A stretch of 64,000 bases of DNA, from sequence record NC_014636.1, one strand, 5' to 3'. A model generated the notes under the pieces. It saw only the letters and a list, made by a program, of their open reading frames with translations, did no database searches and was not told the DNA's origin. The first letter of the stretch is position 1; each line of letters opens with the position of its first letter. Below, piece after piece: positions 22,906 to 59,375 of the stretch. The translations under genes were made by a program, and so were the position numbers.

Positions 22906-22943
22906 TATGTGGGCCATTATACAGACCCACATATTACAGTCAA
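22906..22943 (-). promoter_or_regulatory. sigma70-type early promoter with inverted repeat enclosing -10
   Basis: TTGACT-N16-TATAAT; arms TATGTGGG (22906-13) and CCCACATA (22926-33). Confidence 0.75.
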
Positions 22944-23125
22944 GCTTTTTTGTTTTCGAACTTCCAGACTTTTCGACGTTTTGCCTTTCGAGCGTTGCGA
23001 GCGTCTTCCACTTCGGCATAGATGTTCATGATCTGAATTTCGGTCATTTCGAAATTCTTCATTGCTTTTTCCATGCCAAACTGTTCTACCGCAAAGTGAA
23101 CGGCAATCTTATCTTTGTTTACCAT
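22940..23125 (-). CDS. Small basic hypothetical protein (possible degenerate HTH)
   Basis: 61 aa; tandem with HTH genes; shares RRKVW motif with upstream gene. Confidence 0.6.
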   Translation of the reverse strand: MVNKDKIAVHFAVEQFGMEKAMKNFEMTEIQIMNIYAEVEDARNARKAKRRKVWKFENKKA

Positions 23126-23126
23126 G

Positions 23127-23525
23127 TTAGCCCGCCAGTGCTGCCGCGAAAGCCATAGACATTGCAGTTTGCGGCTGTACCGGTTTCACAAAATTGGTAC
23201 GCTTTTCCTGCTTCTTAACCGGAGTGTAAGTCCACACTTTACGACGCTGCACTACCTTCACCGGGATTTCAACCGATTCTGTCGGATACACTCGATTATT
23301 ACCGTTAACCACATCGGTTTTCATTACCGGGATTTCAACGGTATCGGCAGCTTCGTTGTCCTCGTCGATCACGGTGATTGTCTTAGCAGCGACGCGAGCG
23401 GCTTCCACTTCTTTGATCCAGCGAGATACGGTACTTGCGGATACGTTGAGTTCGCGAGCGATTTGTGCCTTGGAGGTGCCATTTTCGTTCATGAAATGGG
23501 CTTTGATCTTGGTAGCGTTAGTCAT
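23127..23525 (-). CDS. HTH DNA-binding protein (paralogue 1)
   Basis: SKAQIARELNVSASTVSRW. Confidence 0.8.
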   Translation of the reverse strand: MTNATKIKAHFMNENGTSKAQIARELNVSASTVSRWIKEVEAARVAAKTITVIDEDNEAADTVEIPVMKTDVVNGNNRVYPTESVEIPVKVVQRRKVWTYTPVKKQEKRTNFVKPVQPQTAMSMAFAAALAG

Positions 23526-23550
23526 ATCTAGTTCCTATGTGATCGATTGA

Positions 23551-23778
23551 TTAAGCGGCTTTCTTCGGATTGTTGTATACGTACTTGGCACGACGCTGAA
23601 CTTTACCAGCAAACTGAGCTTCCAGTTTAGCAGCCACTTGTTCACGACGCATTTCATTAACTTTGTCCATGTAGCGACCAACAGTGCGAGGGGAGACATT
23701 CAGCTCGCGAGCAACTTGAGCTTTGGTTTTGTTGGCGGCGGTAACTGCGAAGTAGGCTTTGATTTCGACGTTTTGCAT
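23551..23778 (-). CDS. HTH DNA-binding protein (paralogue 2)
   Basis: TKAQVARELNVSPRTVGRY; RBS GAGGAA. Confidence 0.8.
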   Translation of the reverse strand: MQNVEIKAYFAVTAANKTKAQVARELNVSPRTVGRYMDKVNEMRREQVAAKLEAQFAGKVQRRAKYVYNNPKKAA

Positions 23779-23784
23779 GATGTA

Positions 23785-23912
23785 TTCCTCAGTTTGTTTG
23801 TTTGATGAATCGCGTTTCGCGTTTCGATGTGGTCATAATAGCAGGTACGGATTTCGATGCAAGCACTTTTTGAAAAAATTATAAAAAAAAAATCCCGCCG
23901 GAGCGGGATTCT
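23785..23912 (-). promoter_or_regulatory. Terminator-UP-element-promoter-RBS cassette (PeSL-like), copy A
   Basis: AATCCCGC-NNNN-GCGGGATT stem with poly-U, A/T tracts, TTGCAT-N16-TATTAT, shared leader GACCACATCGAAAC, GAGGAA RBS. Confidence 0.8.
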
Positions 23913-23914
23913 TG

Positions 23915-24478
23915 TCACAGGTAGATCACAGACGATTCGTGGATTCCATCTGGGGAGATATGAACAAACATACTGTTGCGGGGTTCGCGAACAACGACGC
24001 GCATATCGGACTTCTTCATCAGTTCGGCAACGAATTTCTTGAAATCGCTACTTTTTTCTGATTTCAGATCGGCATATTGTGCAGAATCAATGCTGCTAAA
24101 CCAATAGCTGTCATTGACATTGCTCATATTCCATGCCCATGGATACTTATCGCCGACGACATCAAACGCCATTTTGCGCTGTGATGATTGCACAATCGGA
24201 GATTCTTCTTCGATTTCTTCCTCGATTACTTCAACCGGCACAGTTTCGATTACTTCTTGTTTGATTTCTTCTGTGGATTCCGGTTTTTGTTCGACGATGG
24301 GTTCCTTAGTATCAGCTTCTTTCGCTGCTAATGCATCCTCGATTGTTTTAACCATATTGTCAAAGCTCATACTACGCTTGACAACTGCACCAACTTCCAG
24401 CGCATATTTTTCAAGCTCAATCTTGCCTTGCTTGTCGCCTAGTGCGCGGAATGTTTCGATCTTTTGATAATCGACCAT
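23915..24478 (-). CDS. inh: Inh-like prohead protease inhibitor (paralogue 1)
   Basis: N-terminus (MVDYQKIETFRALGDKQGKIELEKYA..VKRSMSFDNMV) and C-terminal VREPRNS resemble T4 Inh; CTAAATA on minus strand at 24522-24528. Confidence 0.7.
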   Translation of the reverse strand: MVDYQKIETFRALGDKQGKIELEKYALEVGAVVKRSMSFDNMVKTIEDALAAKEADTKEPIVEQKPESTEEIKQEVIETVPVEVIEEEIEEESPIVQSSQRKMAFDVVGDKYPWAWNMSNVNDSYWFSSIDSAQYADLKSEKSSDFKKFVAELMKKSDMRVVVREPRNSMFVHISPDGIHESSVIYL

Positions 24479-24524
24479 TCTTTTCTCCTTGTTAAAAGAT
24501 AGCCCACATCGGGCATATCTTTAT

Positions 24525-25229
24525 TTAGAAGAAGTGGTGATACTGACTATTTCTTGACTCGCGAACGATTACCTTGCCGTTCGTCTGGATGTAATAAAGC
24601 ATATCCATCAGGAAGTCTTTATCGTTGCCGTCATATTTCGGAACGTTGATTTTCCAGTCTCGTGGCTGTTCGGTGATCCAGTCGAGAATCCAGTACGGAA
24701 GATTCATATAAGCATCTTTACCGTATCCGATCAACTCAGTTTTCGGCTTATAGTCGTTGCCAATATGAACAACATGATGACCAGAAGAAGGAACATCACC
24801 GTTGCCGATTTGCGACAGGATTCCCATCGATTCTAGAACACCCATGTTAACTCTGGGTGTAGATACGTCGATCACTTGTGTGCTAATAAACTCAGGAACG
24901 GTCATTGCATGAATGCCTTCTTCCGAAGCATCAACCTTGTACTCACCCACGGGTGCATCGCTAAGATCGATAGGACACGCGCCAACGCATTCCTGTTCAA
25001 CAACAATAGGTTCGTCAGCGATATCAGGTGGACCGAAGCTAGTTGTTTCTGTGACACCATTAGCCATTGCGTCCAGTTTGTCCATGATAAGACCAATTTG
25101 GTCTTTCAGGCTAATGCCAGTCTTGGCAACTTTTACGCCATGCTCTTTACAATACTTCTGAATTGCTGCTTTCGCTTCTGCCGCGGGCAATTCATCGCGG
25201 TATTTGAAAATCTGCTCAATATCGATCAA
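24525..25229 (-). CDS. inh: Inh-like prohead protease inhibitor (paralogue 2)
   Basis: MIDIEQI..EAKAAIQKYCKEHGVKV; LPYWILDWI; VIVRESRNS. Confidence 0.75.
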   Translation of the reverse strand: MIDIEQIFKYRDELPAAEAKAAIQKYCKEHGVKVAKTGISLKDQIGLIMDKLDAMANGVTETTSFGPPDIADEPIVVEQECVGACPIDLSDAPVGEYKVDASEEGIHAMTVPEFISTQVIDVSTPRVNMGVLESMGILSQIGNGDVPSSGHHVVHIGNDYKPKTELIGYGKDAYMNLPYWILDWITEQPRDWKINVPKYDGNDKDFLMDMLYYIQTNGKVIVRESRNSQYHHFF

Positions 25230-25654
25230 ACTGTGATATCTCCATGTTTTTGTGCAATCTTGTCGATTGTATCGACTTCTGAAAGACGAAGTTTAGCAAG
25301 CTCCATCATTTCTGTAAACACCCGGGCCTCATTTTCGATAAACTTGTCGGTATCAATGATATAAAGCTCATTGAAATATCGCTCGGTAACACGCTTGCGA
25401 GTTGGAGTATTGACAATCTCCCGACCCGGACATTGAACAAGCTGAACATATGCTAGATTCTTTGTGTACGTTCTCCCGTGCTGGGTGACTTGTTGCAAGT
25501 TAACAGCCCGAATGATGTAAAACTTGAAACCTTCATTTCCCTTATGAATCGCAAACGCACCTGCACGATGGTGCTTATATCCGTTATCGCTATTCGATTC
25601 GAGAATAGGATAGTTATGATACCACTGCTTGCGATCATTGTAATTAATTGACAC
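25226..25654 (-). CDS. Hypothetical protein (probable GTG start)
   Basis: Long ORF in packed operon. Confidence 0.6.
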   Translation of the reverse strand: MSINYNDRKQWYHNYPILESNSDNGYKHHRAGAFAIHKGNEGFKFYIIRAVNLQQVTQHGRTYTKNLAYVQLVQCPGREIVNTPTRKRVTERYFNELYIIDTDKFIENEARVFTEMMELAKLRLSEVDTIDKIAQKHGDITV

Positions 25655-25871
25655 GATATTTCGTCTCCAGTAAATGTTTAGCGTAATACCCGGCACCACA
25701 AATCGGCCCAGCGATCATTACCATGATTGTATAGGATGTCGCAAGATCAGGTATTCCCATATTATACAGAGATACCACGATGATTGCAAAGACATATCCC
25801 AGCATAGACGCAATCATGCCGTTTGCGCCCATGCAGTATTTCTTGATGAAACGGAGAAACTTTATCACCAA
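25644..25871 (-). CDS. Small two-TM membrane protein
   Basis: Two hydrophobic stretches. Confidence 0.6.
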   Translation of the reverse strand: MVIKFLRFIKKYCMGANGMIASMLGYVFAIIVVSLYNMGIPDLATSYTIMVMIAGPICGAGYYAKHLLETKYRVN

Positions 25872-26122
25872 CTTACCTCAATATAGCTGTTATCAAGCTG
25901 ATTTGATGCATGATGAATCTTCGCTTTGTAACCGAGTTTGTTTAATTCGTCAATAACACGGTCTTGAACCGGATAAGGAGGCATGCTAGTAGACGTCGCG
26001 GAACGACGACCACTCTCCGCTGCTTTACGAACTGACTTTTCAATCACTTCAATCATATACCGATTGATTGCTGCCATGCCGTTTTCATCTGACAGTTTAC
26101 CAGCTTCCATTGCGTTAATCAT
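25865..26122 (-). CDS. Hypothetical protein, paralogue family X
   Basis: MNAMEA..IEKSVRKAAESG..ELNKLGYK..IEVSW pattern shared with three other ORFs. Confidence 0.65.
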   Translation of the reverse strand: MINAMEAGKLSDENGMAAINRYMIEVIEKSVRKAAESGRRSATSTSMPPYPVQDRVIDELNKLGYKAKIHHASNQLDNSYIEVSW

Positions 26123-26445
26123 TTATCACCCCATTTCAGATGTACGATTGTACCAGAAATACCATGCGATCTTGTGCTTGCATAATCAACAACGACTTTA
26201 TAACCAAGCTCACGGAGAATATCATATACATATGGATTGATATCTTTGATTATGTCGTCCGTTACCTTATAAGTATACAATCCTTTCTTAGCAGCAGTCT
26301 CGACCGCAGTCAAGATTTTTCCAACACAAATATCGGCTTTTCGAAGTTTTTCTTGGTCTTCAATATCGATTGCTTGCTTTGTCAGATTCGCCGCCGTTTC
26401 TGCATTCATGTTTGCATAACTCTCGATTAGATCTTGTTTATTCAT
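26119..26445 (-). CDS. Hypothetical protein, paralogue family X
   Basis: MNAETA..VETAAKKG..LRELGYKV..HLKW. Confidence 0.65.
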   Translation of the reverse strand: MNKQDLIESYANMNAETAANLTKQAIDIEDQEKLRKADICVGKILTAVETAAKKGLYTYKVTDDIIKDINPYVYDILRELGYKVVVDYASTRSHGISGTIVHLKWGDK

Positions 26446-26482
26446 GTTATCTCCAAATGAGGGCCGAAGCCCTCGAATTGTT

Positions 26483-27508
26483 TTACCAATCTCCGTCGCA
26501 GATAGAAACCCAGTTCGGACGAATCATGTTACCGATTTCGGTATTAATCAGACGCATAACGCGACCAGCTTCATCTGCCGATTCTTTGACGGATACGCCG
26601 TCGAGTTCGTCGCGCTCATAGTCTTTCTGAACGTCTTTGGACATGAGTCCCAGAACTTTACCGAATTCGTTGGTCTTCGGAGTGCCCATTTTAGAAAGAA
26701 CGTTCTTGAGGCGATTATCAGTGATATAGCGACTGATGTCAAGAACGAGTGCCTTATCCTTTTCGGAAAGTTCTTTCACTTCTACTTGAACAGCGCGACC
26801 CTTACCGGTTTCGCTCCATTTTTCGTTCTTGCATTTGATCGCGACGCGATTGCCGTTACGGAAACGAGCTGCAATAGCTGGTTTAGCAACGTAGCCCTCA
26901 GCGATGTTAGTATCACCAACACGAATCACAACCGGCTTGCCTGCATTTACATCCATAACAACAGATTGCAGATCTACCGGGATTTTCATGATTTCAGCGA
27001 AAGTGCCAATCTTGAGCAGTGGTGCAGTTTTCAGACCGGCGGCATCACACATTGCTGCCATGTTGAAATCGGCAAGAATTTCCATTTCTTCGTCGCGATG
27101 AACCATGATGTCGAACACATAGAAATCTTGAGGACCGTATTCTATACCAGTTTGAATCCACTTGCCGTAGGACATGATACCAGCGTATTCGCCAAACACC
27201 GCGATAGTTTCGCCGCGCTCGACCATACCATGAGTAATCATGATCTCATACAGGTCTTTGATCTTGCGCTCATAGCGGGCAACGATTACCTGATGATCAT
27301 AGAAGCTAGACGCTTCACCAGCGAGGAAGCTAGAACGCTTACCAGGCAGAAAATCAGTACCATCGAACCACATAGAGAAGTTAGTGCCGTGAATCTTCTC
27401 ACGCGCTACCCACAGAGTCTCGGAATCAGCGTGGCCTTGCTCTTGAACAGCGAAAATCACTTTTTGCTTGGTATGATTTTCCATTTCAGGATAAGATTTA
27501 AATTTCAT
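26483..27508 (-). CDS. rnl2: RNA ligase 2 (likely start MKFKSY)
   Basis: Motif I EKIHGTNFS; VFGEYAG, FYVFDI, AEGYVAK, IKCKNEKWSE. Confidence 0.93.
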   Translation of the reverse strand: MKFKSYPEMENHTKQKVIFAVQEQGHADSETLWVAREKIHGTNFSMWFDGTDFLPGKRSSFLAGEASSFYDHQVIVARYERKIKDLYEIMITHGMVERGETIAVFGEYAGIMSYGKWIQTGIEYGPQDFYVFDIMVHRDEEMEILADFNMAAMCDAAGLKTAPLLKIGTFAEIMKIPVDLQSVVMDVNAGKPVVIRVGDTNIAEGYVAKPAIAARFRNGNRVAIKCKNEKWSETGKGRAVQVEVKELSEKDKALVLDISRYITDNRLKNVLSKMGTPKTNEFGKVLGLMSKDVQKDYERDELDGVSVKESADEAGRVMRLINTEIGNMIRPNWVSICDGDW

Positions 27509-27509
27509 G

Positions 27510-27809
27510 TTATTTCCTTTTCTTTCGTTTCTTGTTGCGATTTGAGTTGATGTGACCAATATCTTGACATTCTTCCTGAAGACTAAACCCTTTGTTCTTC
27601 ACGCTGGATCGATTTGAGTAGATTGGTCTAACTTTTGTAAAGTGTATACCTTGTCCACTCTTTGCGTCAAGCATTTTTCGTAAAAAGTTTTTGGCACTTC
27701 GTTCGTCGTTACTTCGTTTTGTATCTACATCAAATGCGGCCTTCATGCCCATGACCACTAGAATACCAACACCGAACAAAAGTAGCCCGTAGTCTTGTGG
27801 GTCTACCAT
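27510..27809 (-). CDS. Membrane-anchored basic protein
   Basis: N-terminal TM, basic C-terminus; RBS GAGG; upstream TTGACA-N17-TAGAGT. Confidence 0.6.
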   Translation of the reverse strand: MVDPQDYGLLLFGVGILVVMGMKAAFDVDTKRSNDERSAKNFLRKMLDAKSGQGIHFTKVRPIYSNRSSVKNKGFSLQEECQDIGHINSNRNKKRKKRK

Positions 27810-27937
27810 AATGTTTACCTCTTGTGAATAGATGACCACTCTACACTATGAATTTCCGTTTGTCAATAAAAAGAAAAGGGAGAGTTCCCGTGCAAGAAAC
27901 TCTCCCTTTGTAACAATCCATTGTAGATACACTTTTA

Positions 27938-28327
27938 TTATTGTTCTTGTCTATCTGTTCTCTGCCAACTATCCGTGATTGGCGCTACCTCACCCGGTCT
28001 GCGTTGATTTTGTTCAACTTTTCTAGATAGATCATCTATTTTAGCTTGCATTTGATCTAGGAGCTTTCGATCCTCTATCGTTTTTGCATCACCAACTTCC
28101 TTAGCATAAAGCATTGATTTAAGTTGGGCGTTTTCAACGTCGCTGTGTGTCGGTAGCTTGGAAATGTCGTCCTTGAGTGATGCCACCGATTGGTCAAAAT
28201 GCGCAGTGATTTCCTCTTTCAACTTGTAATCGCGCTGATCGCCGATAAACGAGTTGTAAGCGAATACCGCACCCCAAATGGTGACAAACATCGTCAAGGT
28301 TGAAACGACGTTTTCTTTTATATTCAA
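27938..28327 (-). CDS. N-terminal TM + coiled-coil protein, probably late
   Basis: TTG start with AGGAG RBS; ATAAATA on minus strand at 28372-28378. Confidence 0.65.
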   Translation of the reverse strand: MNIKENVVSTLTMFVTIWGAVFAYNSFIGDQRDYKLKEEITAHFDQSVASLKDDISKLPTHSDVENAQLKSMLYAKEVGDAKTIEDRKLLDQMQAKIDDLSRKVEQNQRRPGEVAPITDSWQRTDRQEQ

Positions 28328-28456
28328 CTACAAACACTCCTTAACCGTAACTTGTAATTAAGTTACACGCTTATTTATTGTTTATGGAATGCACAATTTC
28401 TGATACAATCCCATTACACCTGCTAAATAAGACAATAAACTGTTAGGAACTGTTCA

Positions 28457-29968: not shown

Positions 29969-30212
29969 TCAATTCCTGTGTGAAGCAGAGGAGAAAGCCC
30001 GCGTAGCAATCGAGGGCTTTCTCGATAAGATTTACAACTGCAAAACTGTTGACGGTGTGAGCGAACTGGAGAAATTCTACAGTAAGCGCAAAACCGAGGT
30101 AAACATCAGCGATTCGGAAGATATTCAAATTCGCGACGCACTGAGCGGACGAAAGAAAGAGATCGAAGCGCAAGAAAGTGCCGATGCAGAAGGCAAAAAA
30201 GTTGACCTATGA
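29955..30212 (+). CDS. uvsW.1: UvsW.1
   Basis: FLDKIYNCKTVDGVSELEKFY..DIQIRDALSGRK; directly follows uvsW. Confidence 0.85.
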   Translation: MKTLNQFLCEAEEKARVAIEGFLDKIYNCKTVDGVSELEKFYSKRKTEVNISDSEDIQIRDALSGRKKEIEAQESADAEGKKVDL

Positions 30213-30237
30213 AAAAGGGAGCCGATGGCTCCCTTTT

Positions 30238-30552
30238 TTATTTCCGGAATCTTGCAGAACCATGAAGGTTAAGAACACTATCCTTTTTATCGTACACTGT
30301 AACGAGTTGATCGCCTTCGCGCACAAGATAGATAACCCGGTCGCTTACGTAGAAATCAACTGGGTTATATCCATGACGTTCGTAAATGAAAGTCATGAAA
30401 CGGGTATTGTTCTTGATACTCGACTCAAGTTTGCTTTTGTAGAAATCGCGAGAAATCGCAGAAGCAACCGATTGACCTTCGACAAGCATGTCGGGGAAAC
30501 GCTCTTTAAAGCGGGTCAGAACGTGGCGAGTGAAATTAACCTTCATGTTCAT
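30238..30552 (-). CDS. Hypothetical protein (RelE-like-looking FTRHVLTRFKER motif)
   Basis: FTRHVLTRFKER..YLVREGDQLVTVY. Confidence 0.55.
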   Translation of the reverse strand: MNMKVNFTRHVLTRFKERFPDMLVEGQSVASAISRDFYKSKLESSIKNNTRFMTFIYERHGYNPVDFYVSDRVIYLVREGDQLVTVYDKKDSVLNLHGSARFRK

Positions 30553-30555
30553 AAT

Positions 30556-33373: not shown

Positions 33374-35317
33374 ATGAGTATAAAAGATATGCTGCTGACT
33401 GAGGCGTCTCCGCTCCCGTATTCGGCAGTCAAAGCAACAGTAACATCATCAACGAATGATATTTGGACATTTACTGTAGCAGGTAAAACTTTAGGTGTCA
33501 AAGCAAATAGTCTCAGAACATCTGGACTCACTGCTTACAGAAAATCTAAACTACCATCAGTATTTCACATGTTCTCTATCGATGCAAGTGGTAAAACATC
33601 GAAGACAGTTAAAATGATTCCGCAGGCACCAAATGTGATTGCAACCGTTGCTGAGATTATAGCAAACGAAACTCACGATAACAAGCTAAATGATGTAGTT
33701 ATTTTCCGTGTTCCTGCTTCTATGGGACGCGCGGAAACCGTTAGCTCACTGATCGCCCGCTACATCAAAAAGTCCGCTGTTCCTTTTGAACAAAAGGGCG
33801 TTGTTAATGTTGGCGAAAAAGGTTTCAACTATGTTTTCATGACTCGCAAAGGCAAGTCTCCTACCGTCGCAGAAGTGTTCGGTATCAAGGACGAAGATGT
33901 CCAAAGCTTGACACTGGATCAAATCGACGCAAACGAAACAGCAGTGGAAGAGATTGTATCGAAGATTGAACCAAAGATCAAGCTTGCTGTGCCGTCTAAG
34001 GTGAAATTCAGCGAAATTGTTGCAAGTGCACCTGCTAACGATAGAGTAATCGATTTCGAGAAGAAAAATCCACCGATCATTAGAACTTTTGATGCAACAA
34101 AGCGTCCAGAATTTAAGATGTCTGAGCTATACGGGCTGTATTATGAACCGGACAATCCCATAATGGGAGCTAAAGACTTGTCGCAAGAATTCAAAGCCAT
34201 GGCTCGTGGTGGTCTAATGGACGCAATTTCATTGAACTCTATGGCAGATGCAACGGAAGCTAGAGAATACGCGCTCAAGATCGTCGAAATGGGGATCACC
34301 ATGGCCGACTTTTTGCGCAAGACTCCAAAATATGAGGAAGTTAAACGATTTGTTGAAGAAGAAGTAACCGGCAACGAGAAAGAAGCGATTAACATCATGG
34401 ACGCCATATTTGTTAGCGGCATCGTTGAGGGAGTTAGCGTTCCTATCACTCGTTCTTATCAGCAATACAAACCCAGTATGTCAACAGCAAACAAAAAAGC
34501 GATTGAGAAATATTGCGGTCAAGGATTTACTGCAATGAATGAGTTTCTAATCGAGGGCGGAACAAGTTCAAGCGTTGCTAATATCATTCAAGAATTAGAT
34601 CTCGCTTTCATGGAAGCTGGAGTTAGAGTTGATCCAAAGCTAACTGTTTATCGTGGTTCTCAATTGAAGTCAGAGGAAGCAAGTTCGGCAGCGAAATCCA
34701 AGCTATTCTACTTTAGATCGTTTGTCAGTACATCATTGAATCCAAAAGTCGGATTTACGTTTGGTGGAAACGATAAAGCAAAAATAGCCAAGATCATGAC
34801 CGCAGCGGATCGAGTTGAATCCCTGGAAGGGAAAACTATGGCACACGAACGTGTTATCGCGGCATTCATGATCAATGGTCTAGATAGTATACCAGTTCTG
34901 ATTCCAGGGGCCCATAGTCCATTTGCGGCTGAGTGTGAGATTATTTTGCCTAGAGGCACAACAATTCGAATCAATGACATGGCAACAGCAAAGGTAAATC
35001 CATTTGATTCGGGTGTATCTCACATCGTATTTGAGTGTTCGGTTGTTCCCCATTCCGAGATCAGTATCAACGAAGTCGTTTATGATGGCGACGAATTTGC
35101 CGAAACAGGAAGACTTGTTGAATTCACCGAATTCTGTCGTTCTTCTAGCATTATGACAGAAGCAAAGAAGAAATCAAGCAAGGAACAAGAAAGAATGGAC
35201 GCTGCGGTAGGATTTATGACTGCGGTTAACAGCGACGCATTCACAAAGCGTTTGACTAAGAAAGAAAAAGAAGAAATAGAGCGCATTGCGGCAAAATATT
35301 GCTCGCGACTGATCTAA
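33374..35317 (+). CDS. alt: Alt-like NAD:protein ADP-ribosyltransferase
   Basis: R-S-E ART motifs: VYRGS, FVSTSLNP, AECEIILPRG; late promoter CTAAATA at 33342; position next to ligase as in T4. Confidence 0.85.
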   Translation: MSIKDMLLTEASPLPYSAVKATVTSSTNDIWTFTVAGKTLGVKANSLRTSGLTAYRKSKLPSVFHMFSIDASGKTSKTVKMIPQAPNVIATVAEIIANETHDNKLNDVVIFRVPASMGRAETVSSLIARYIKKSAVPFEQKGVVNVGEKGFNYVFMTRKGKSPTVAEVFGIKDEDVQSLTLDQIDANETAVEEIVSKIEPKIKLAVPSKVKFSEIVASAPANDRVIDFEKKNPPIIRTFDATKRPEFKMSELYGLYYEPDNPIMGAKDLSQEFKAMARGGLMDAISLNSMADATEAREYALKIVEMGITMADFLRKTPKYEEVKRFVEEEVTGNEKEAINIMDAIFVSGIVEGVSVPITRSYQQYKPSMSTANKKAIEKYCGQGFTAMNEFLIEGGTSSSVANIIQELDLAFMEAGVRVDPKLTVYRGSQLKSEEASSAAKSKLFYFRSFVSTSLNPKVGFTFGGNDKAKIAKIMTAADRVESLEGKTMAHERVIAAFMINGLDSIPVLIPGAHSPFAAECEIILPRGTTIRINDMATAKVNPFDSGVSHIVFECSVVPHSEISINEVVYDGDEFAETGRLVEFTEFCRSSSIMTEAKKKSSKEQERMDAAVGFMTAVNSDAFTKRLTKKEKEEIERIAAKYCSRLI

Positions 35318-35346
35318 AAGGGAGCCCTCGGGCTCCCTTTCTTTTT
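35317..35346. terminator. Bidirectional terminator alt/ligase
   Basis: AAAAGGGAGCCC-TC-GGGCTCCCTTT. Confidence 0.8.
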
Positions 35347-41784: not shown

Positions 41785-41848
41785 TCATTTACTTCCAAAT
41801 GAGTTTAACACACGTTGCATCTAAGTGCAACTCCCTTTTCGTTTCGCT

Positions 41849-41895
41849 TGTCGCGTCAACAAAGCTATAATAGCTCATTGACGCGACACAGTAAA
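41849..41895 (-). promoter_or_regulatory. gp31 promoter with 11-bp inverted repeat enclosing -10
   Basis: TTTACT-N17-TATTAT; TGTCGCGTCAA (41849-59) and TTGACGCGACA (41878-88). Confidence 0.7.
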
Positions 41896-41897
41896 CA

Positions 41898-42227
41898 TTA
41901 GATTCGAATCAGGTCTTCGATTTTCAGAGTGCCGATACTGATCAGTTTCTGGAGCTGGAAGCTTCTCCAGTTACCGCTACCAACTTCGAAGAATCGGCAA
42001 GATTCGAAGCTTTCGCGACGAATGGTAGCAGGCTTGGTTTCTTTTTCAAACCCTTCTTTGCCAATTTCTTCGGTAATGATCTTCGGTTGCAGAGTAGCAT
42101 TAGCAACTCGAATGGTGCCGTCTACTTTTTCGAACACCACTTGATGTTCGCCCATGCGAAGAATTGCTTCAACGCAACGTTTTACGATTACTTTTTCGCC
42201 TTCGGCGAGATCTTCCCACTTTCTCAT
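41898..42227 (-). CDS. T4 gp31.1-like SH3/WYL-like protein
   Basis: VVFEKVDGTIRVANATL..FFEV..NWRSF. Confidence 0.75.
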   Translation of the reverse strand: MRKWEDLAEGEKVIVKRCVEAILRMGEHQVVFEKVDGTIRVANATLQPKIITEEIGKEGFEKETKPATIRRESFESCRFFEVGSGNWRSFQLQKLISIGTLKIEDLIRI

Positions 42228-45747: not shown

Positions 45748-45905
45748 TTTCTTCTCCTATTTGTTTGGAATAGAAAGATACCTTTTTCTACACACTTCCT
45801 TAGTTGAGTTTGATTGATGATTGCCAAGCGATTATTACATCAAGATACCGATCTGTCAACACTATTTTCTGGTAACAGATCGGTTTGATTATAATCTATA
45901 CACGT

Positions 45906-48742: not shown

Positions 48743-49119
48743 AATCTCCAATCGGTAACATACCACAACAATCAAACACTATTCTACGCTTTTTGTCAAC
48801 CTGTAACTCTCGAACTCCATAGATTGAAAATGTCTTATGTTTTCGAACTGCTAGATTCCAAACGTTACGTAAGAATCTATATTCTCGATTGACGCCTGTC
48901 AATGTCATTTCATTGATGATTACCAAATTCGGCGTGGTGCTGGAAAACTTGTAAACACCGCTGCCGTCTATACAAGCGAAATCGTACATGTATTTGGCAA
49001 TGAAAAATCTAATGAAAACTCGACCTCGTTTGAAGCCTCTCCATGGAGCTCCGTTCGCTACCTCAGGCCATGAATCGAACTAGAGCGTCCAACTTATTAT
49101 GAACAGTTGGACGTCCCAT

Positions 49120-50750: not shown

Positions 50751-50941
50751 TCAACTCTCCTAAGGTAGTCTTCTAGATTACCAGTTACGATTCTTGACTT
50801 TGCGCCTTTGTATTGAAAAGTCAAGAGACATTTGCCTTTACCAAACCACGATACATCGCTTTGTTTCGCGTCTTTAATGAGGGCATTCAACGGAACGCCC
50901 TGCATTTCTTTGATAACTCGATAGCTCGGAACTTTTACCAT
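50747..50941 (-). CDS. Small hypothetical protein
   Basis: Coupled ORF. Confidence 0.5.
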   Translation of the reverse strand: MVKVPSYRVIKEMQGVPLNALIKDAKQSDVSWFGKGKCLLTFQYKGAKSRIVTGNLEDYLRRVE

Positions 50942-51506: not shown

Positions 51507-51521
51507 ATAATAACTCCATAA

Positions 51522-51546
51522 GAAAAATCCCGCCGAAGCGGGATTC
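51522..51546 (-). terminator. Terminator hairpin of the cassette family (UUCG loop)
   Basis: AATCCCGC-CGAA-GCGGGATT with A-tract. Confidence 0.85.
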
Positions 51547-51548
51547 GA

Positions 51549-52601: not shown

Positions 52602-52686
52602 TTTACCAAAACTCCTTTGGACGCCACACTCAGAGCGGTGGCTTAACTCATGTGAACTATTATACAGATTTGAATTCAGAAATCAA

Positions 52687-53184: not shown

Positions 53185-53338
53185 GTTGGCTCCCAAATGT
53201 TAAATTGTAAGATTGTTGTTGTCAGGTTCAAAACTGGGATCCGCACCATATGAGCGCCGGATTCGCATAACTGAATATAACTGGCAGTGTATACGGAACC
53301 GTTCCATATCACAACTACCAATTCGTTTTCTTCGAACA

Positions 53339-53533
53339 TTATTTCACTTCCACCCAATAATAGCTAGATGCGAATGTGTTGGTCTTCGGTACTTCTACTG
53401 TCTTACCATCTACAGTTGCCGTGATTGTGTCTCCGTTATCTCTCACTATCACAGCACGATAGCTGTATCCGCTGATCAAAACTTGACAGGGACGACCGAC
53501 AACATATTCTGGTAGCCCATATTTCAGACTCAT
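53339..53533 (-). CDS. Small SH3-like hypothetical protein
   Basis: Coupled ORF, beta-rich. Confidence 0.55.
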   Translation of the reverse strand: MSLKYGLPEYVVGRPCQVLISGYSYRAVIVRDNGDTITATVDGKTVEVPKTNTFASSYYWVEVK

Positions 53534-53799
53534 TTCAAACCCTCACAAAAAGTTGTGACACGATCAAACTCGGTATAATCCCGAAACGGATTGGACATGA
53601 AATAAAGCGTCCGAAGAGAGACCGAGTTATGCAGCTCACACAGCTTTGGATATTCGTCATAAACGAAAATGTTTTTCTCCATGCGCTGCATAACAGTTTC
53701 GAGATCTGTTCTAATTGCTTGTGCCGCAACAAAACCACTACTGATTAAGCTAAGTGCCGCAATGATAGATGCTTTGATAATCACAGATATTTCTCGCAT
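53530..53799 (-). CDS. Possibly exported small protein
   Basis: N-terminal hydrophobic signal-like segment. Confidence 0.55.
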   Translation of the reverse strand: MREISVIIKASIIAALSLISSGFVAAQAIRTDLETVMQRMEKNIFVYDEYPKLCELHNSVSLRTLYFMSNPFRDYTEFDRVTTFCEGLK

Positions 53800-54161
53800 T
53801 CGTTAAAGTATTTCATGGAAGAATTTAGTTCGATTGCGTATACCCGCTTTGATTCCAGATTCTTACACGATTGGGTCAATTGTGCAAGACGGAATCCTTT
53901 GGATTCGCTGGCTTTACTGATCAACTCCATACTTGGATTACTAGCTCGTTTCAGTATTTCCAATGTCAGATTATCATTTTCTACCATTGTCATGTATAAC
54001 CTGACGTCTTGTTGTGCCGTCTCAACTTCGAGTGTCCAATTATTTTGACGCTTCCAGTGAGCAATGGAAATTAGAGCGGAAAACATACACACGGTAATGA
54101 CTGCCATTGCGATTAAGTATGCCTTTTGATGTTTCACAGGAAAACCCCTTGTTCGCCACAA
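53781..54161 (-). CDS. Membrane-anchored coiled-coil protein
   Basis: N-terminal TM; start uncertain. Confidence 0.55.
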   Translation of the reverse strand: MWRTRGFPVKHQKAYLIAMAVITVCMFSALISIAHWKRQNNWTLEVETAQQDVRLYMTMVENDNLTLEILKRASNPSMELISKASESKGFRLAQLTQSCKNLESKRVYAIELNSSMKYFNECEKYL

Positions 54162-54559
54162 ATGTTATGAACTGCTTGCAGTTTGATTTGTTCCTCTGAA
54201 CCATATTGCAAGTCATCAACTGACTGTCGTTGTTCATACAAATCATATATCTGACAAGCGGCGCGAACTTCTAATCCTCTAATCGAAATCAAGCTATCAT
54301 TTGCGCGTTTTATGGTAGGAAGAATATCGCTACCTCTCAGATCTAATTCCTCTTGTTGATACTGAATCTTTTTATCAACTAAATCGGCATATTCGTCGAT
54401 TACGTCCTGTACCAGTTTGTCTTCGTATTCGCTTAATTGCTTCGGTTTTACTACAAAAGGACCTTCGATGATTTTAACTGGTGTAACGCTGTTCATGCCC
54501 AGAACGAAAGAACCTGTACTGATTACGGCACCTAAAATCAAAGCTTGATATCGTTTCAT
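54134..54559 (-). CDS. Possibly exported/membrane-anchored helical protein
   Basis: N-terminal signal-like segment. Confidence 0.6.
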   Translation of the reverse strand: MKRYQALILGAVISTGSFVLGMNSVTPVKIIEGPFVVKPKQLSEYEDKLVQDVIDEYADLVDKKIQYQQEELDLRGSDILPTIKRANDSLISIRGLEVRAACQIYDLYEQRQSVDDLQYGSEEQIKLQAVHNICGEQGVFL

Positions 54560-54831
54560 TTTACCAACTCCGGTTTGACTGTAGAGAAGTTCAGAACACC
54601 TTGACCGTATCCGTTATCTTCGGTCATCACTTCTTTCATATAAAGAGGAAATTCGTGTTCTTCGTAATCCCGATCCATAAACAACCAACGACCGAAATTG
54701 TATTGTTCGCAAAACTTGGTAAATTCTTCTTTATTGGAAATCAGAGTGTAACCAATCTTGATCATAAATTCGTGCATGATGTCTTCCTCATTTTGTTGTT
54801 GGCATATTATCATGCCCACATACTCAGTCAA
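54556..54831 (-). CDS. Hypothetical protein
   Basis: Coupled ORF. Confidence 0.5.
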   Translation of the reverse strand: MTEYVGMIICQQQNEEDIMHEFMIKIGYTLISNKEEFTKFCEQYNFGRWLFMDRDYEEHEFPLYMKEVMTEDNGYGQGVLNFSTVKPELVK

Positions 54832-55191
54832 TCACTTTTTGAAAGTAATTTCGGTGCCGTTATCGCACAGAACGGTGATTTCGTTGTTGCTGATGATCTG
54901 AACTACTTTGAATTTCTGAGTGTTGAACTTGCGATCCATCACGTTGAAGCTAGTTTTGTAACCATACTTCTTGCCGAGTTCAACCGGAGTTTTACCAAAC
55001 AGCTTTTTGTAAATCTCGTATTCGCTGCTGTGAGAGATTACAGCGACTTGGCCCTTGGAGTCCAACAGCATATAAGACGGCATAACAAATTGCTGGGTGT
55101 TGTTGTGAATGTGAAAACCCAGGCGTTTAGCAGCTTCCAATTCTTTCAGAGTTTGCAGGCCTTTGGCGATTGTTACGTCTTGCTTAGTCAT
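54832..55191 (-). CDS. Hypothetical early protein
   Basis: First gene after cassette B. Confidence 0.65.
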   Translation of the reverse strand: MTKQDVTIAKGLQTLKELEAAKRLGFHIHNNTQQFVMPSYMLLDSKGQVAVISHSSEYEIYKKLFGKTPVELGKKYGYKTSFNVMDRKFNTQKFKVVQIISNNEITVLCDNGTEITFKK

Positions 55192-55197
55192 GATGTT

Positions 55198-55292
55198 TTC
55201 TCAGTGTTTCGTTTCGATGTGGCTATAATAACAGGCTCATGTCTCGATGCAAGCACTTTTGAAAAAAAAAATCCCGCCGAAGCGGGATTCTT
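55198..55292 (-). promoter_or_regulatory. Terminator-promoter cassette (PeSL-like), copy B
   Basis: UUCG terminator 55270-55289; TTGCAT-N16-TATTAT; leader CCACATCGAAACGAAACACTGAG. Confidence 0.8.
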
Positions 55293-55294
55293 GA

Positions 55295-55864
55295 TTAACG
55301 GAGTTTGATAGTCTTGGCTTCACCGGTTTCGAAAGCTTCGTTGGTTTCTTTGTCAAGAACAATCTTACACAGAGAATCAACGTCTTTCTTTGGGAAACCC
55401 GCGAGTCGAGACATAAAGCCAGACATCACGAAGTTACGTTGGTTTTCATAGCCACCACAAACATCCAGCTTCTTATCTTGGCTCAGTTTGAACTCATTGC
55501 GACCAGCTTCCATAGCAACTTGCAGACTCTTATACATGCTGGAATCGAACGGCAGATTATTTTCAGTCATGAACTGAGTAACAGCCTTTGACCCGTCTTT
55601 ACCGTAGCGACCCTGGAAAGTTGCGTCGATTACTTTTTTCAGATCTGCGGTATACATTTCTGGAATCTGTGCCATATCACGAATCTTGAGAGTATACGCG
55701 CTCAGAGTGTTCTGGCTCGCTTTGTGGAACTTCTCGATATTCGTTTCGAACTGAGTATTGGTATTCGAGGTACTGACGTACATCCCAACAAAGCCCAGTA
55801 CAGGAACAACAATCAGACCGATAACCAGAACCAGAACAGCAATCAGAGTTTTATTCATTTTCAT
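55295..55864 (-). CDS. LemA-like membrane-anchored helical protein
   Basis: Single N-terminal TM, then YVSTSN...helical bundle...SRLAGFP-type C-terminus; start uncertain. Confidence 0.55.
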   Translation of the reverse strand: MKMNKTLIAVLVLVIGLIVVPVLGFVGMYVSTSNTNTQFETNIEKFHKASQNTLSAYTLKIRDMAQIPEMYTADLKKVIDATFQGRYGKDGSKAVTQFMTENNLPFDSSMYKSLQVAMEAGRNEFKLSQDKKLDVCGGYENQRNFVMSGFMSRLAGFPKKDVDSLCKIVLDKETNEAFETGEAKTIKLR

Positions 55865-55919
55865 TTCCTTTAACATCATTGAGAATATAACCAGAGACCA
55901 ACCAATTTTGTCAATCATT

Positions 55920-56981
55920 TTAATCTCTGGAGAAGAAGTAACCAACAGCGATAGACGACCCGATACCCATCACAAGAGCGAGAATCACTACCCACAAGGG
56001 AGGTTCGCTTTGATCTTTCAGATATTCAAACTGTTCCATCGGCAGACGGTTGTATTTGTTTGCGATAATACTAACATTCTGTTTCAGCAAGTCAAGCGAT
56101 ATTTCTTTATCAACCGACTCATTTCGCAGAGTAATATGGAGTTCTTGGTTACCCATCCCATTGCCCAAACTTGTGCTCTGGAACCATGCTACTTTGTTAG
56201 TGCCTTTTTCGATGCCAAACGCCATAACGACATCATTTTTCTTACCACCGGCCCAATTATAGAACAGTGCTTGAGAGAATTCAAGTGGTTCATTGGTCAA
56301 AACGGCAATAATATTCAACTGCTTATCTTTGCCCAAAGACTTCAATGCCTCAGACAGATACATATTCCAATCTTTGGTATTCGCTCCGGTGAGATTGATT
56401 ACACGATTAACGTTATAGTAATCATACACTTCTGGATATTTCGGAATCTTGTTCTTATACGCTTCAATCAAATTCTTGTCGTGCGCAAACAGAGAATCTG
56501 GTGCCGCTTTGATGTAGTTGGTATATCCGTGTTCACGCGCTGCTGGATCACCGATTACGACTTTCGAAAAACGTGGTGGCTCAAGAGTGCCACGACGGTC
56601 GATTCGATCAATCTCAAAGTTACCTACCGTAGTGTGTACGTCCCAATCCCAGTCGTTTGAGTGTTCATAACAAGTATCGCATTGGCGAGTTGTAGAGCAG
56701 GACCGATTTTTACCAGATCCGGAACAAGTTCGAACTTGGCGACACCGGCAATCATAACTATGCGAACAGCTAACCCATGTGCGCTCTTTGGATGTCACGT
56801 ACCCACTCAAGATCTCGGTATCGTACATCGCTCGATATGCACCCATTCCATAAACTAATCCAGTCAACGCCACAGCGATGGCCGCGTTGGCAGCCATTTC
56901 GCCATAGGTATACGTGCGCTTGAACCAGAATTTGTATATGAACGGTACAAGCAGTGGTACGATCAAAATCAGGTAGAACAT
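55920..56981 (-). CDS. Multi-TM protein with Cys-rich loop and TPM-like domain
   Basis: Two N-terminal and one C-terminal TM; CSHSYDCRC..C..C..CDTCYEH; LNIIAVL..ALFYNWAGGKKNDVVM. Confidence 0.6.
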   Translation of the reverse strand: MFYLILIVPLLVPFIYKFWFKRTYTYGEMAANAAIAVALTGLVYGMGAYRAMYDTEILSGYVTSKERTWVSCSHSYDCRCRQVRTCSGSGKNRSCSTTRQCDTCYEHSNDWDWDVHTTVGNFEIDRIDRRGTLEPPRFSKVVIGDPAAREHGYTNYIKAAPDSLFAHDKNLIEAYKNKIPKYPEVYDYYNVNRVINLTGANTKDWNMYLSEALKSLGKDKQLNIIAVLTNEPLEFSQALFYNWAGGKKNDVVMAFGIEKGTNKVAWFQSTSLGNGMGNQELHITLRNESVDKEISLDLLKQNVSIIANKYNRLPMEQFEYLKDQSEPPLWVVILALVMGIGSSIAVGYFFSRD

Positions 56982-56995
56982 GACAATTTCCTCAG

Positions 56996-58051
56996 TTACC
57001 GCATTGCGGCTTTGATAGCTTCGATTCGACCAAGCTGGATTGCTTTACCAAGCTCTGGCCCACTGATGCCACTATACTGTTCCGACGTTACGCTGTCAAA
57101 TGCTTTTTCAATCTTTTTAAGCTTTTCTTTTGTGAATCGAAAAACATCGTTCAAATCGACCCAATGGGTAAGATCGATCAGCTCGAACAACTCCTCACGG
57201 AACTTGTCCTTCGTTGCATTCAGCATATGATAAACAATGCTGGAGTAATCGGCATTGTGATCGATTTTCTCTCCCATAGGGACAAAGAACTTAGCGGCAA
57301 TCATCGCAAACTTCTTGTAATCGCTCGGAACTTTGGCAACTTTGTAAAACGGTGCCATGTCCGACGCGAGAGCGACGCTTGCAAATTGCAGCAACGGATC
57401 GGCTTGTCTCAGATACCGGAGATTACCATATTCCAGATTGTATCCAAGAGCTTGATCGACACCAGTCACCTTTGTCAGGAAAATAAATTCGCTGAATTTA
57501 GGACCGAATGCTTTTTCGTACTCTTTCCAGATGCGCTCAGTTGTGAGGTGTGCCATTCGTCCATCTTCGATGCACCGATCAATGCACTCTATGGTCATTT
57601 CAGACAAGCGCATATCATAACGAGCGCCGAAGCGACAAGCGCGAAAAGCTCGCACTGGATCCTCATGAAATGCGTGTTCATTCACAACGTTGATAACGCC
57701 GGCTTTGATGTCTTTTTGACCACCGTATGGATCAACGACTACGCCGTTAAAATTCAGTGCCATCGCGTTCATGGTGAAATCGCGACGTTTCAGATCTTCT
57801 TCCAGTGTTACACGTGGGTTAAAGTCGGTAACGAAATCGTTATAGCCTTTACCAGTAGACCGTTCAGTCCGTGCGAGAGCATACTCCTGACCGAGATCAT
57901 CGAGATATACAGGGAAATCGGCACCAACTTTCTGATAACCAGCTTCCATCATATCTTCGTGGGTTGCGCCAACCACGACATAATCGCGATCTTTAGGCTC
58001 GACACCCATTACCATATCTCGAACTGCACCACCTACCAAATAGATATCCAT
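56996..58051 (-). CDS. cca: tRNA nucleotidyltransferase (CCA-adding, class II)
   Basis: YLVGGAVRD, KDRDYVV, ALARTE, EEDLKRRDFTMNA, EDPVRAFR. Confidence 0.92.
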   Translation of the reverse strand: MDIYLVGGAVRDMVMGVEPKDRDYVVVGATHEDMMEAGYQKVGADFPVYLDDLGQEYALARTERSTGKGYNDFVTDFNPRVTLEEDLKRRDFTMNAMALNFNGVVVDPYGGQKDIKAGVINVVNEHAFHEDPVRAFRACRFGARYDMRLSEMTIECIDRCIEDGRMAHLTTERIWKEYEKAFGPKFSEFIFLTKVTGVDQALGYNLEYGNLRYLRQADPLLQFASVALASDMAPFYKVAKVPSDYKKFAMIAAKFFVPMGEKIDHNADYSSIVYHMLNATKDKFREELFELIDLTHWVDLNDVFRFTKEKLKKIEKAFDSVTSEQYSGISGPELGKAIQLGRIEAIKAAMR

Positions 58052-58287
58052 CAGTTTTTCCTCATTTTGTAGAATTCAGTCAACTTGACCGCCCACTTAT
58101 CTTCGATGATAAGAGTCGGGTTAGTTTTCATTGGTAGAGTCTGACACATGATAACATAGTTGTCAATGTCTCTCCTCAGAATATATCGAACATCTTGTTG
58201 GAGTGCTGGGTCGTTTATCTTTGCCGACTCGTTGAGATCATATCGCAGCTTATACGCTTCGTCATATGTAAACTGAATCATTGCCAA
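58051..58287 (-). CDS. Small hypothetical protein
   Basis: Coupled ORF. Confidence 0.55.
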   Translation of the reverse strand: MAMIQFTYDEAYKLRYDLNESAKINDPALQQDVRYILRRDIDNYVIMCQTLPMKTNPTLIIEDKWAVKLTEFYKMRKN

Positions 58288-58532
58288 CGTCCTGTTTCCA
58301 ACATATGCATGATTGCAGAGGCATGATCATCGTCGATTTCGACTGTGCTTGCGGTATCATAGTTGATATCCAGCATGTCTACCATGTTACAGAACCGTTT
58401 CAGTCTGTTATCAACACGTTCGATTGTGAATTGGATCAGACCACCGAGGACTTGAACACTATCCGGGTCTGCGAGCATACGAAAGATAATCTCACGCATT
58501 TTTTCAGCGGCTTTATAGTCTAGACGAATCAT
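58278..58532 (-). CDS. Small hypothetical protein
   Basis: Coupled ORF. Confidence 0.55.
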   Translation of the reverse strand: MIRLDYKAAEKMREIIFRMLADPDSVQVLGGLIQFTIERVDNRLKRFCNMVDMLDINYDTASTVEIDDDHASAIMHMLETGRWQ

Positions 58533-58801
58533 TTTGCTTGCTCCAAGAAACGGTATGCATTAAGGATAAATGGTACGAACATGTCATCGATGTTAACTCG
58601 ACTTGTTGAGTCTCCCATCAAAGTTGTGCCCATCTTTTTTGTTAATTCAACAAACGGCTTGAGAACTCGATCTGACAACATTCCCATGTGGAAAATTTCA
58701 TTCGCGGCGTTATTCCACAATGTTGAGCCTTGATTTTCATGCCAGCGAACTTGACCGATTACGTGGATTATACTCTCCGCGTTTTTGATGTCAACTATCA
58801 T
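58529..58801 (-). CDS. Small hypothetical protein
   Basis: Coupled ORF. Confidence 0.55.
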   Translation of the reverse strand: MIVDIKNAESIIHVIGQVRWHENQGSTLWNNAANEIFHMGMLSDRVLKPFVELTKKMGTTLMGDSTSRVNIDDMFVPFILNAYRFLEQAK

Positions 58802-59025
58802 TTCAATACCTCGACAATCAGTTCCAGATCATCTGTGATTATCGGATATGTGCTGTTTGTATCGGTTGTGAGTTTGCACATACGGATGAAAGAGGATAGC
58901 TTAGTTTTCAGCGATTCCATTTTCATTCGATTTTTGTTTTCTAATGTGTCCCATTGTGCTCGACTCATTCCACACAGTTTGCTATGGATACTGACGACGA
59001 CGCCGTAAGATATTTGGACGTACAT
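58798..59025 (-). CDS. Small hypothetical protein
   Basis: Coupled ORF. Confidence 0.5.
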   Translation of the reverse strand: MYVQISYGVVVSIHSKLCGMSRAQWDTLENKNRMKMESLKTKLSSFIRMCKLTTDTNSTYPIITDDLELIVEVLK

Positions 59026-59282
59026 TATGCTGCCTTTTTGTTTTGACGACGGGTTACAGTGCTCGGCTTGGTGCCAACGAATATCACTTTCTTGGTACCA
59101 CGCTTGATGCCAGCGAACTTCTTTTCCAGGTCGGCGGCGATTTGAGCTTTAACAGCTTCGCGGCCTTGTTCTACCCAGCGACCGATGGTACGAGGAGATA
59201 CATCCATGTCACGGGCGACTTGAGCTTTGGTAACTTGCTTGCGAACTACAGAAACATAAGCTTGGATTTGAACGTTTTTCAT
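59025..59282 (-). CDS. HTH DNA-binding protein (paralogue 3; start MKNVQIQ)
   Basis: TKAQVARDMDVSPRTIGRW; 5' leader GAGGAATACATCATG identical to that of 23551-23778. Confidence 0.8.
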   Translation of the reverse strand: MKNVQIQAYVSVVRKQVTKAQVARDMDVSPRTIGRWVEQGREAVKAQIAADLEKKFAGIKRGTKKVIFVGTKPSTVTRRQNKKAA

Positions 59283-59287
59283 GATGT

Positions 59288-59375
59288 ATTCCTCAGTTTT
59301 GTTTGGAAGACTGTTTCGTCTTGATGTGGTCATAATAACAGGTACTAGGACCACGTCAACTACTTTTTCAAACTT
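59288..59375 (-). promoter_or_regulatory. Cassette-type early promoter with 11-bp inverted repeat enclosing -10
   Basis: TTGACG-N16-TATTAT; TTGATGTGGTC (59321-31) and GACCACGTCAA (59349-59), 10/11 match. Confidence 0.75.

Follow-up and report, generated by a model that had tools for sequence, protein, structure and literature searches.

Promoter-early stem-loops (PeSLs), described in the T4-like phages RB49 and phi1, are cassettes of about 100 bp that combine an AT-rich region, a near-consensus sigma-70 promoter, a stem-loop and a ribosome binding site and, in the excerpted text of the paper describing them, fall into sub-classes with the stem-loop upstream of the promoter, over the -35 box, between the boxes, over the -10 box or downstream (Arbiol et al. 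2010, PMC2839356). The same excerpts report that one PeSL stem-loop cut the expression of downstream lacZ about as much as the rrnB T1 terminator, that PeSL recombination generated indels and mini-circles, and that promoter/stem-loop combinations had been reported earlier at T-even internal-protein (IP) loci (PMC2839356). PeSLs were later extended to T4/PST and KVP40/nt-1, and in the excerpted account the stem-loop there immediately precedes the promoter (Comeau et al. 2014, PMC4122927). In the excerpts of these two papers phiAS5 goes unmentioned, and Aeh1 appears once, for "PeSL-like sequences" near g43 (PMC2839356). Here, we analyse hairpins enclosing the -10 box of early promoters in Aeromonas phage phiAS5, with particular attention to a 64,000-nucleotide stretch of its genome (hereafter the window). 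Judged by their sequence, these hairpin promoters are PeSL architecture of the RB49 type in a further T4-like branch. The published analysis of Aeh1 early promoters makes no mention of stem-loops, and a literature search for later functional work on PeSLs found none.

The window is identical to bases 1-64000 of phiAS5 (HM452126 / NC_014636), a T4-like phage of 225 kb in the genus Chrysonvirus of the Straboviridae. From about 20.7 kb onward nearly all genes in the window lie on the minus strand, including the T4 early/middle genes for DNA ligase, gp31, cd, pseT, rnlA, denA and td, among which many small open reading frames (ORFs) without known function are interspersed. Rfam and tRNA scans of 20-64 kb returned no match, and none of the public RNA runs screened for phiAS5 contained the phage (best share ≤0.14 of sampled words).

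Hairpins around the -10 box of early promoters

A sequence-only reading of the window had described four minus-strand promoters whose -10 box lies within an inverted repeat, together with two further repeats resembling them. All six repeats are present at the stated coordinates on the minus strand, with RNA folding energies of -15 to -24 kcal/mol and z-scores of -3.0 to -5.7 against dinucleotide shuffles. Four of them (22906, 36851, 41849 and 59321) each surround the -10 box of a strong early promoter of the sigma-70 type. These promoters combine a -35 box of TTGACN or TTTACT, a spacer of 16-17 nt and a -10 box of TATAAT or TATTAT with an A-rich region upstream and a Shine-Dalgarno sequence and ATG downstream.

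22906..22943, minus strand: ORF0024 early promoter with -10-enclosing hairpin; 8-bp arms at 22933-22926 and 22913-22906; -35 TTGACT at 22943-22938; -10 TATAAT at 22921-22916, in the loop
36851..36890, minus strand: DNA ligase promoter with -10-enclosing hairpin; 9-bp arms, 5' at 36877-36869 and 3' at 36859-36851; -35 TTGACA at 36887-36882; -10 TATAAT at 36865-36860
41849..41900, minus strand: gp31 promoter with -10-enclosing hairpin; 11-bp arms at 41888-41878 and 41859-41849; -35 TTTACT at 41895-41890; -10 TATTAT at 41872-41867, within a small nested palindrome
59321..59359, minus strand: ORF0093 promoter with a weaker hairpin; 6-bp core arms at 59354-59349 and 59331-59326; -35 TTGACG at 59359-59354; -10 TATTAT at 59337-59332

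The hairpins of the ORF0024 and DNA ligase promoters fold at -16.1 kcal/mol (z = -3.4) and -18.4 kcal/mol (z = -5.4), respectively, and that of the gp31 promoter at -17.0 kcal/mol, or -24.4 kcal/mol when unconstrained (z = -5.4). The ORF0093 hairpin (-10.4 kcal/mol, z = -2.95) is the weakest of the four and is absent from the positional orthologues in Aeh1, PX29 and Ah1. Its arms had been given as 10/11 bp, of which the 6-bp core stands; the -35 TTGA pairs with a downstream TCAA, extending the stem to about 11 bp only across one A.C mismatch.

Strict promoter matches in the whole genome number 85 (71 on the minus and 14 on the plus strand) and follow the consensus aaaaagt(a/g)(g/a)-TTGACN-16/17 nt-TAnnAT, with AT-rich sequence upstream and a location on the early-gene strand. 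A genome-wide count against shuffled controls, suggested with the sequence-only reading, found 19 strict promoters with a perfect repeat of at least 7 bp around the -10 box, against 2.5 ± 1.5 when spacer and flanks were shuffled and 3.6 at random positions. We also applied a half-swap null, in which 5' halves are recombined with 3' halves from other promoters and the positional consensus is thereby kept, to 89 minus-strand candidates (a promoter with a downstream ribosome binding site and ORF), counting hairpins of -9 kcal/mol or better. A hairpin enclosing the -10 box was found in 19/89 candidates, compared with 2.9-3.5 expected, and 4/18 candidates within the window reached the threshold, compared with about 0.7. 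The phiAS5 hairpins are thus roughly 5-7 times commoner than under the shuffle and half-swap nulls. Short repeats as such are also frequent: 185 repeats of 8 bp occur genome-wide against 63-95 in local shuffles, so that around half are at chance level and an isolated 8-9 bp repeat, such as that at 49086-49113, carries little weight.

Repeat centres near promoters concentrate in two places, at the -10 box and 40-60 nt upstream. Hairpins of the -10 class have arms of 7-13 bp and a loop with a median of 10 nt (range 5 to 18), and their 3' arm ends 4-10 nt past the -10 box, at approximately +1 to +3. The promoter's own RNA therefore holds essentially none of the hairpin, which bears out the earlier remark that one arm lies upstream of the start site and that this RNA cannot fold. 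Upstream terminator forms and forms overlapping the -35 box also occur in phiAS5. The longest perfect inverted repeat of the genome (15-bp arms, 29-nt spacer) lies elsewhere, among plus-strand late genes at 13771-13829 of the window.

Alignment of the promoters revealed a conserved motif just past the -10 box, approximately G-N-C-C-A-C-A-T-C-A-A-G-A-C, followed by an A/C-rich leader and, in many copies, by ACTGAGGAA-N-ATC-ATG; non-hairpin promoters tend towards the same start-site motif. Where the 3' arm is built on CCACAT, its complement in the spacer reads (GA)TGTGG, and the TGT(G/C)G noticed in several arms is thus real and is the complement of this motif. Other phiAS5 promoters have unrelated arms, for example TAATGCCC, GATGTCGC, GAGGGCAT and the 13-bp ACGTGCGGTCATT; that arm sequences differ between sites, as had been observed in the window, holds within the genome and across orthologues. 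A conserved C-terminal F/L-K-K peptide, checked for in the A-rich upstream element, was not general.

The other two repeats and one additional candidate are as follows.

45847..45884, minus strand: 10-bp repeat upstream of vs.1; the 3' arm overlaps a -35 TTGACA (45859-45854) of a putative promoter
49086..49113, minus strand: 9-bp repeat a few bases past the ORF0072 stop (z = -5.0)
54806..54831 (end approximate), minus strand: weak candidate member; -35 TTGACT at 54831-54826; -10 TAATAT within an imperfect 8-of-9 stem (-5.6 kcal/mol)

The repeat at 45847-45884 (z = -5.7) has the 10-bp arms and the overlap with TTGACA attributed to it, but it lies around the upstream A-rich region and not around the -10 box. 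Its conservation is poor, with only a 5-bp remnant in Aeh1 and none in Ah1. At 49086-49113 the repeat is real and its arms measure 9 bp instead of the 8 bp first given, but no credible -35 box and no recognisable promoter were found there; an aligned orthologous region was sought in the relatives and none was found. We read this repeat as a gene-end hairpin or a chance repeat rather than as a promoter hairpin. Neither repeat is conserved in relatives, and both were rejected as -10 hairpin promoters.

Stop-codon placement and maintenance of pairing

For each promoter we determined how far the stop codon of the upstream ORF lies from the -35 hexamer, pooling the four Aeromonas phages phiAS5, Aeh1, PX29 and Ah1.

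Stop -4 to +5 nt from the -35 hexamer: 58 promoters; -10 hairpin in 30; hairpin between stop and -35 in 0
Stop at least 15 nt from the -35 hexamer: 71 promoters; -10 hairpin in 7; hairpin between stop and -35 in 38 (3.2 expected)

The -10 hairpin is concentrated in the tight class (Fisher p = 1.7e-7, pooled), and the direction is the same in each genome (phiAS5 10/18 vs 3/19; Aeh1 10/17 vs 1/20), including the distant RB49 (6/13 vs 2/20). Three of the four -10 hairpin sites in the window, the ORF0024, ligase and gp31 promoters, fall in this class. The stop is often a TGA inside TTGACN (distance -4), as for the upstream ORF0025, whose TGA at 22942-22940 falls within the -35 hexamer of the ORF0024 promoter; at other tight junctions a TAG or TGA directly precedes the hexamer and is part of the consensus aaaaagt(a/g)(g/a)TTGAC. 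The ORF0047 stop at 36890-36888 abuts the DNA ligase promoter, and the ORF0059 stop at 41900-41898 lies upstream of the gp31 promoter. About half of gene-end/promoter junctions carry a stem-loop whose position depends on the available room, which fits a gene-end RNA element and not a promoter-recognition element.

A T-run follows 29/38 of the upstream hairpins, most of which have UUCG tetraloops, and those with a T-run are predicted canonical intrinsic terminators. An upstream terminator and a -10 hairpin rarely occur together (1/39 vs 24/171), a difference that is borderline under a strict terminator definition (p = 0.054); the stop-distance comparison gives the clearer signal.

Relatives were compared as whole genomes (Aeh1, PX29 and Ah1, with early regions about 70-85% identical to phiAS5) and run through the same pipeline at -9 kcal/mol or better with the half-swap null; the counts for RB49 and T4 are given alongside.

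Aeh1: 15 -10 hairpins observed, 2.7 expected
PX29: 11 observed, 3.1 expected
Ah1: 9 observed, 1.9 expected
RB49: 16 observed, 3.6 expected
T4: 6 observed, 0.2 expected

When orthologous promoters were matched by their downstream protein, a hairpin was present in 24/30 orthologues of phiAS5 hairpin promoters and in 17/90 orthologues of non-hairpin promoters. Pairs changed on both sides, counted at fixed register, were still Watson-Crick in 37/65 cells, compared with 45/165 in controls in which the partner was slid by 1-2 nt (p = 3e-5). At the ligase promoter, two both-sided changes between PX29 (TGAGACAC/GTGTCTCA) and phiAS5 (TGTGGCAC/GTGCCACA) keep the pairing, and the orthologous ORF0024 promoters of Aeh1 and PX29 keep the hairpin with altered arms (GTGGGTC vs GTGAGCC). 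The promoter at genome position 145294 has three unrelated stems of 7-8 bp, in phiAS5, in Aeh1/Ah1 and in PX29, around an invariant loop. The gp31 promoter stem is conserved in Ah1 and, with one G.U position, in Aeh1; a clear equivalent was sought in PX29 and none was found. Together, these comparisons show that the pairing itself is maintained by evolution.

Several neighbouring elements are recorded here in their own right. The gp31 5' leader contains a second conserved hairpin directly after GGGAG (window 41800-41835, minus strand), with a stem of GTTGCA/TGCAAC in phiAS5, GTTGTC/GACAAC in Ah1 and Aeh1, and GTTGTT/AACAAC in PX29; the loop is nearly constant, and covariation affects two positions around it. 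The promoter cassettes at window 59321-59400 and genome ~140570-140650 are nearly identical over about 70 nt, hairpin arms included, and those at genome 162277 and 141142 form another near-identical pair, consistent with cassette duplication or gene conversion. Outside the window, the loop of a hairpin at genome 95373 (stem GGAGGAGGG/CCCTCCT) contains a -35 TTGACA, and a T-run comes directly after the hairpin; this is a terminator enclosing the -35 box of the promoter that follows, and its sequence is conserved in Aeh1, PX29 and Ah1. In T4, early promoters whose -35 box is of the TTTACA type have strong hairpins around the -10 box at positions 65798, 20611, 129917 and 73938.

60338..60363, minus strand: canonical intrinsic terminator with GC-rich stem, UUCG loop and T-run, in a spacer between a gene end and the next gene

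A terminator unit of AATCCCGC, UUCG loop, GCGGGATT and T-run is also found at 23891-23910, 51526-51545 and 55270-55289, giving at least four copies in the window, and elsewhere in the genome, and a second family, AAAAGGCACC-ttcg-GGTGCCTTTT, has at least four copies outside the window, each 3-5 nt before a TTGACA promoter. Both families look like repeated terminator-promoter cassettes. Strong hairpins with symmetric A-runs and T-runs lie between convergent genes at 20679-20710 (head vertex/ORF0021), 30212-30238 (uvsW.1/ORF0039) and 35317-35340 (alt/ligase), and are likely bidirectional terminators; the one after uvsW.1 matches the conserved bidirectional terminator of Nolan et al. 2006.

Proposed gene-end stem-loops and rival explanations

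We propose that these promoters are PeSL-type composite cassettes, in which the hairpin is probably a gene-end RNA stem-loop that forms only in read-through RNA and bounds the upstream unit. Each early gene would tend to end in an RNA stem-loop. Where a spacer is present between the stop and the next promoter, this stem-loop would take the form of an ordinary intrinsic terminator with UUCG loop and T-run, and where the upstream gene extends up to or into the -35 hexamer there would be no room and the stem-loop would be threaded through the promoter. As both arms lie upstream of about +3, the hairpin would form solely in RNA reading through from an upstream promoter, and it would most likely delimit the upstream unit at its 3' end, either through attenuation or termination of read-through or as a barrier to 3' exonucleases. 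It is from this context that we infer RNA rather than DNA to be the active form, and likewise the effect of the hairpin on that RNA. Read-through RNA processing sites had been among the functions suggested for the window; read-through RNA gives the best fit, but a gene-end boundary (attenuator, terminator or 3' stabiliser) is preferred to processing as such.

Several observations weigh against this proposal. The -10 hairpins have no U-tract and are followed by A/C-rich sequence, typically ATCAAGAC; they lack the short loop and direct U-tract of intrinsic terminators, which the upstream hairpins possess, and with loops of 7-18 nt and no U-tract poor termination is expected by standard rules. 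One-sided substitutions between orthologues produced 45 G.U and 49 A.C pairs and so do not amount to proof of pairing in sense RNA, and the excess of G.U over A.C within stems (14 vs 9) is not significant. Folding energy favours sense over antisense RNA (Wilcoxon p = 0.054; 16 vs 2 among strong stems), a lean confounded by the conserved flanks of the -10 box, TG before it and GG after it, which favour wobble on the sense strand. About half of tight gene-end/promoter junctions have no hairpin, which is therefore not obligatory, and the four Aeromonas phages are related, so that the pooled p-values overstate independence.

The hairpins may act as pause sites or 3' exonuclease barriers rather than as terminators. 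We see a slim chance that those without a U-tract are a promoter-assisted stop or pause signal, in which the RNA hairpin combined with the embedded -10 element (sigma-dependent pausing), or with a promoter-bound polymerase, would halt the read-through polymerase. If this were true, no classical terminator would be needed to insulate the tightly packed early genes.

It is unlikely that recombination or mutation bias alone keeps the arms matched, with little or no transcript-level function. PeSLs are recombination hot spots, and template-switch repair can perfect quasi-palindromes, as was reportedly shown classically in T4. Near-identical cassettes recur in the phiAS5 genome (59359/140610; 162277/141142), and the lack of a G.U over A.C bias is what strand-blind maintenance at the DNA level would produce. 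Of the 88 ends of Aeh1-Ah1 indels or replacements, 16 have a promoter no more than 80 nt away, compared with 3.8 for random positions under a null not limited to intergenic DNA; breakpoints and promoters are both intergenic, and this excess is largely expected. The excerpted work of Arbiol et al. showed recombination between PeSLs as well as mini-circles (PMC2839356). However, such a bias leaves unexplained why the hairpin sits at the -10 box where stops are tight and is replaced by a terminator in roomy junctions, and orthologues whose arms have wholly diverged keep its position, which points to selection on pairing there. Template-switch correction and cassette recombination could help to match the arms without explaining the placement rule. 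We consider it distinctly improbable that the read-through hairpin instead serves the downstream gene, either by insulating or modulating its translation or as the target of an endonuclease whose cut would release a monocistronic mRNA that starts where the promoter transcript starts. In its favour, the predicted start site coincides almost exactly with the end of the hairpin, a strongly conserved leader with a Shine-Dalgarno motif follows 15-60 nt downstream, and in T4 hairpins at genes e, soc, 49 and I-TevI separate read-through from internally initiated transcripts. Yet the Shine-Dalgarno sequence and start codon lie outside the hairpin, the stems, at 7-13 bp, are rather short substrates for RNase III, a search for a conserved cleavage motif identified none, and the complementarity with upstream terminators suits a gene-end role better.

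The sequence-only reading had also offered explanations at the level of DNA, and these fare less well. A structure formed by the DNA itself, whether a supercoil-driven cruciform or a single-strand hairpin, might tune promoter melting or recognition; many repeats are perfectly Watson-Crick and centred on the AT-rich, easily melted -10 box, and the wobble statistics are compatible with DNA. We nevertheless hold cruciform or hairpin promoters to be very unlikely, because short arms with spacers of 7-18 nt are ill suited to cruciform extrusion, the repeat is missing from most promoters that share the consensus, and the presence of the hairpin depends on the position of the upstream stop, which would be unexpected for a role intrinsic to the promoter. 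Some conserved stems also contain several G.T positions, which DNA pairing would leave mismatched, for example four in the 13-bp stem at Aeh1 230078. Scarcely credible is the idea that the arms are palindromic operators at which a dimeric phage or host DNA-binding protein, such as the helix-turn-helix (HTH) protein envisaged at the outset, switches early promoters off. Overlap with the -10 box is typical of repressor sites and several arms share TGTGG/CCACA, but this shared motif is accounted for by the conserved start-site sequence, the arms differ widely within the genome and between orthologues, and their spacing varies from 5 to 18 nt instead of presenting a shared half-site at a fixed distance. 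A common protein operator is ruled out, since orthologous promoters keep the hairpin while the arms change, often on both sides, and no single sequence-specific protein could read arms that are entirely different at an orthologous position.

Comparison with known promoter stem-loops

This analysis extends PeSL architecture to the Aeh1/phiAS5 group of large Aeromonas phages, and the hairpin status of orthologues and the both-sided changes provide quantitative support, the first known to us, for stems that are maintained by evolution and not incidental. The placement rule points to a gene-end role in RNA and shows the extent to which signals overlap in compact phage genomes. In practical terms, these cassettes help to annotate early transcription units in T4-like phages, and short promoter-plus-boundary cassettes may suit synthetic biology.

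Hairpin promoters of other kinds bear a more limited resemblance to those of phiAS5. The promoters of phage N4 virion RNA polymerase and the single-strand promoters of conjugative plasmids need an inverted repeat for recognition and involve a special polymerase or DNA state, whereas the phiAS5 promoters are ordinary duplex sigma-70 promoters and most members of the family are free of repeats. In the read-through-sensing hairpins of T4 genes e, soc, 49 and I-TevI the promoter lies inside the hairpin and its own transcript lacks the 5' arm, as in phiAS5. However, the T4 hairpins sequester the ribosome binding site in their 3' arm and their internal promoter is late, whereas in phiAS5 the stem reaches only to about +1, so that the ribosome binding site stays free.

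The PeSLs of T4/PST and KVP40/nt-1, and terminator-promoter junctions generally, have their counterpart in the phiAS5 terminators with UUCG loop and T-run 3-26 nt upstream of the -35 box, and differ, as far as the excerpted description of these PeSLs goes, from the phiAS5 stems that enclose the -10 box without a T-run. Neither the stop-distance placement rule nor covariation between orthologues is reported in the excerpted text of the PeSL papers, in which terminator activity and mini-circles are shown for RB49/phi1 only. RB49 stems are mostly built of a G-run and a C-run, unlike those of the phiAS5 group, which are varied and in many cases built on CCACAT. In other respects the RB49/phi1 cassettes are closely matched in phiAS5: both consist of a near-consensus sigma-70 early promoter with AT-rich sequence upstream and a Shine-Dalgarno sequence and ATG at the 3' end, and both occur in dozens of copies per genome, on the early strand between small ORFs. 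The same -10-enclosing geometry was recovered in RB49, which also shares the start region ATCGAAAC.

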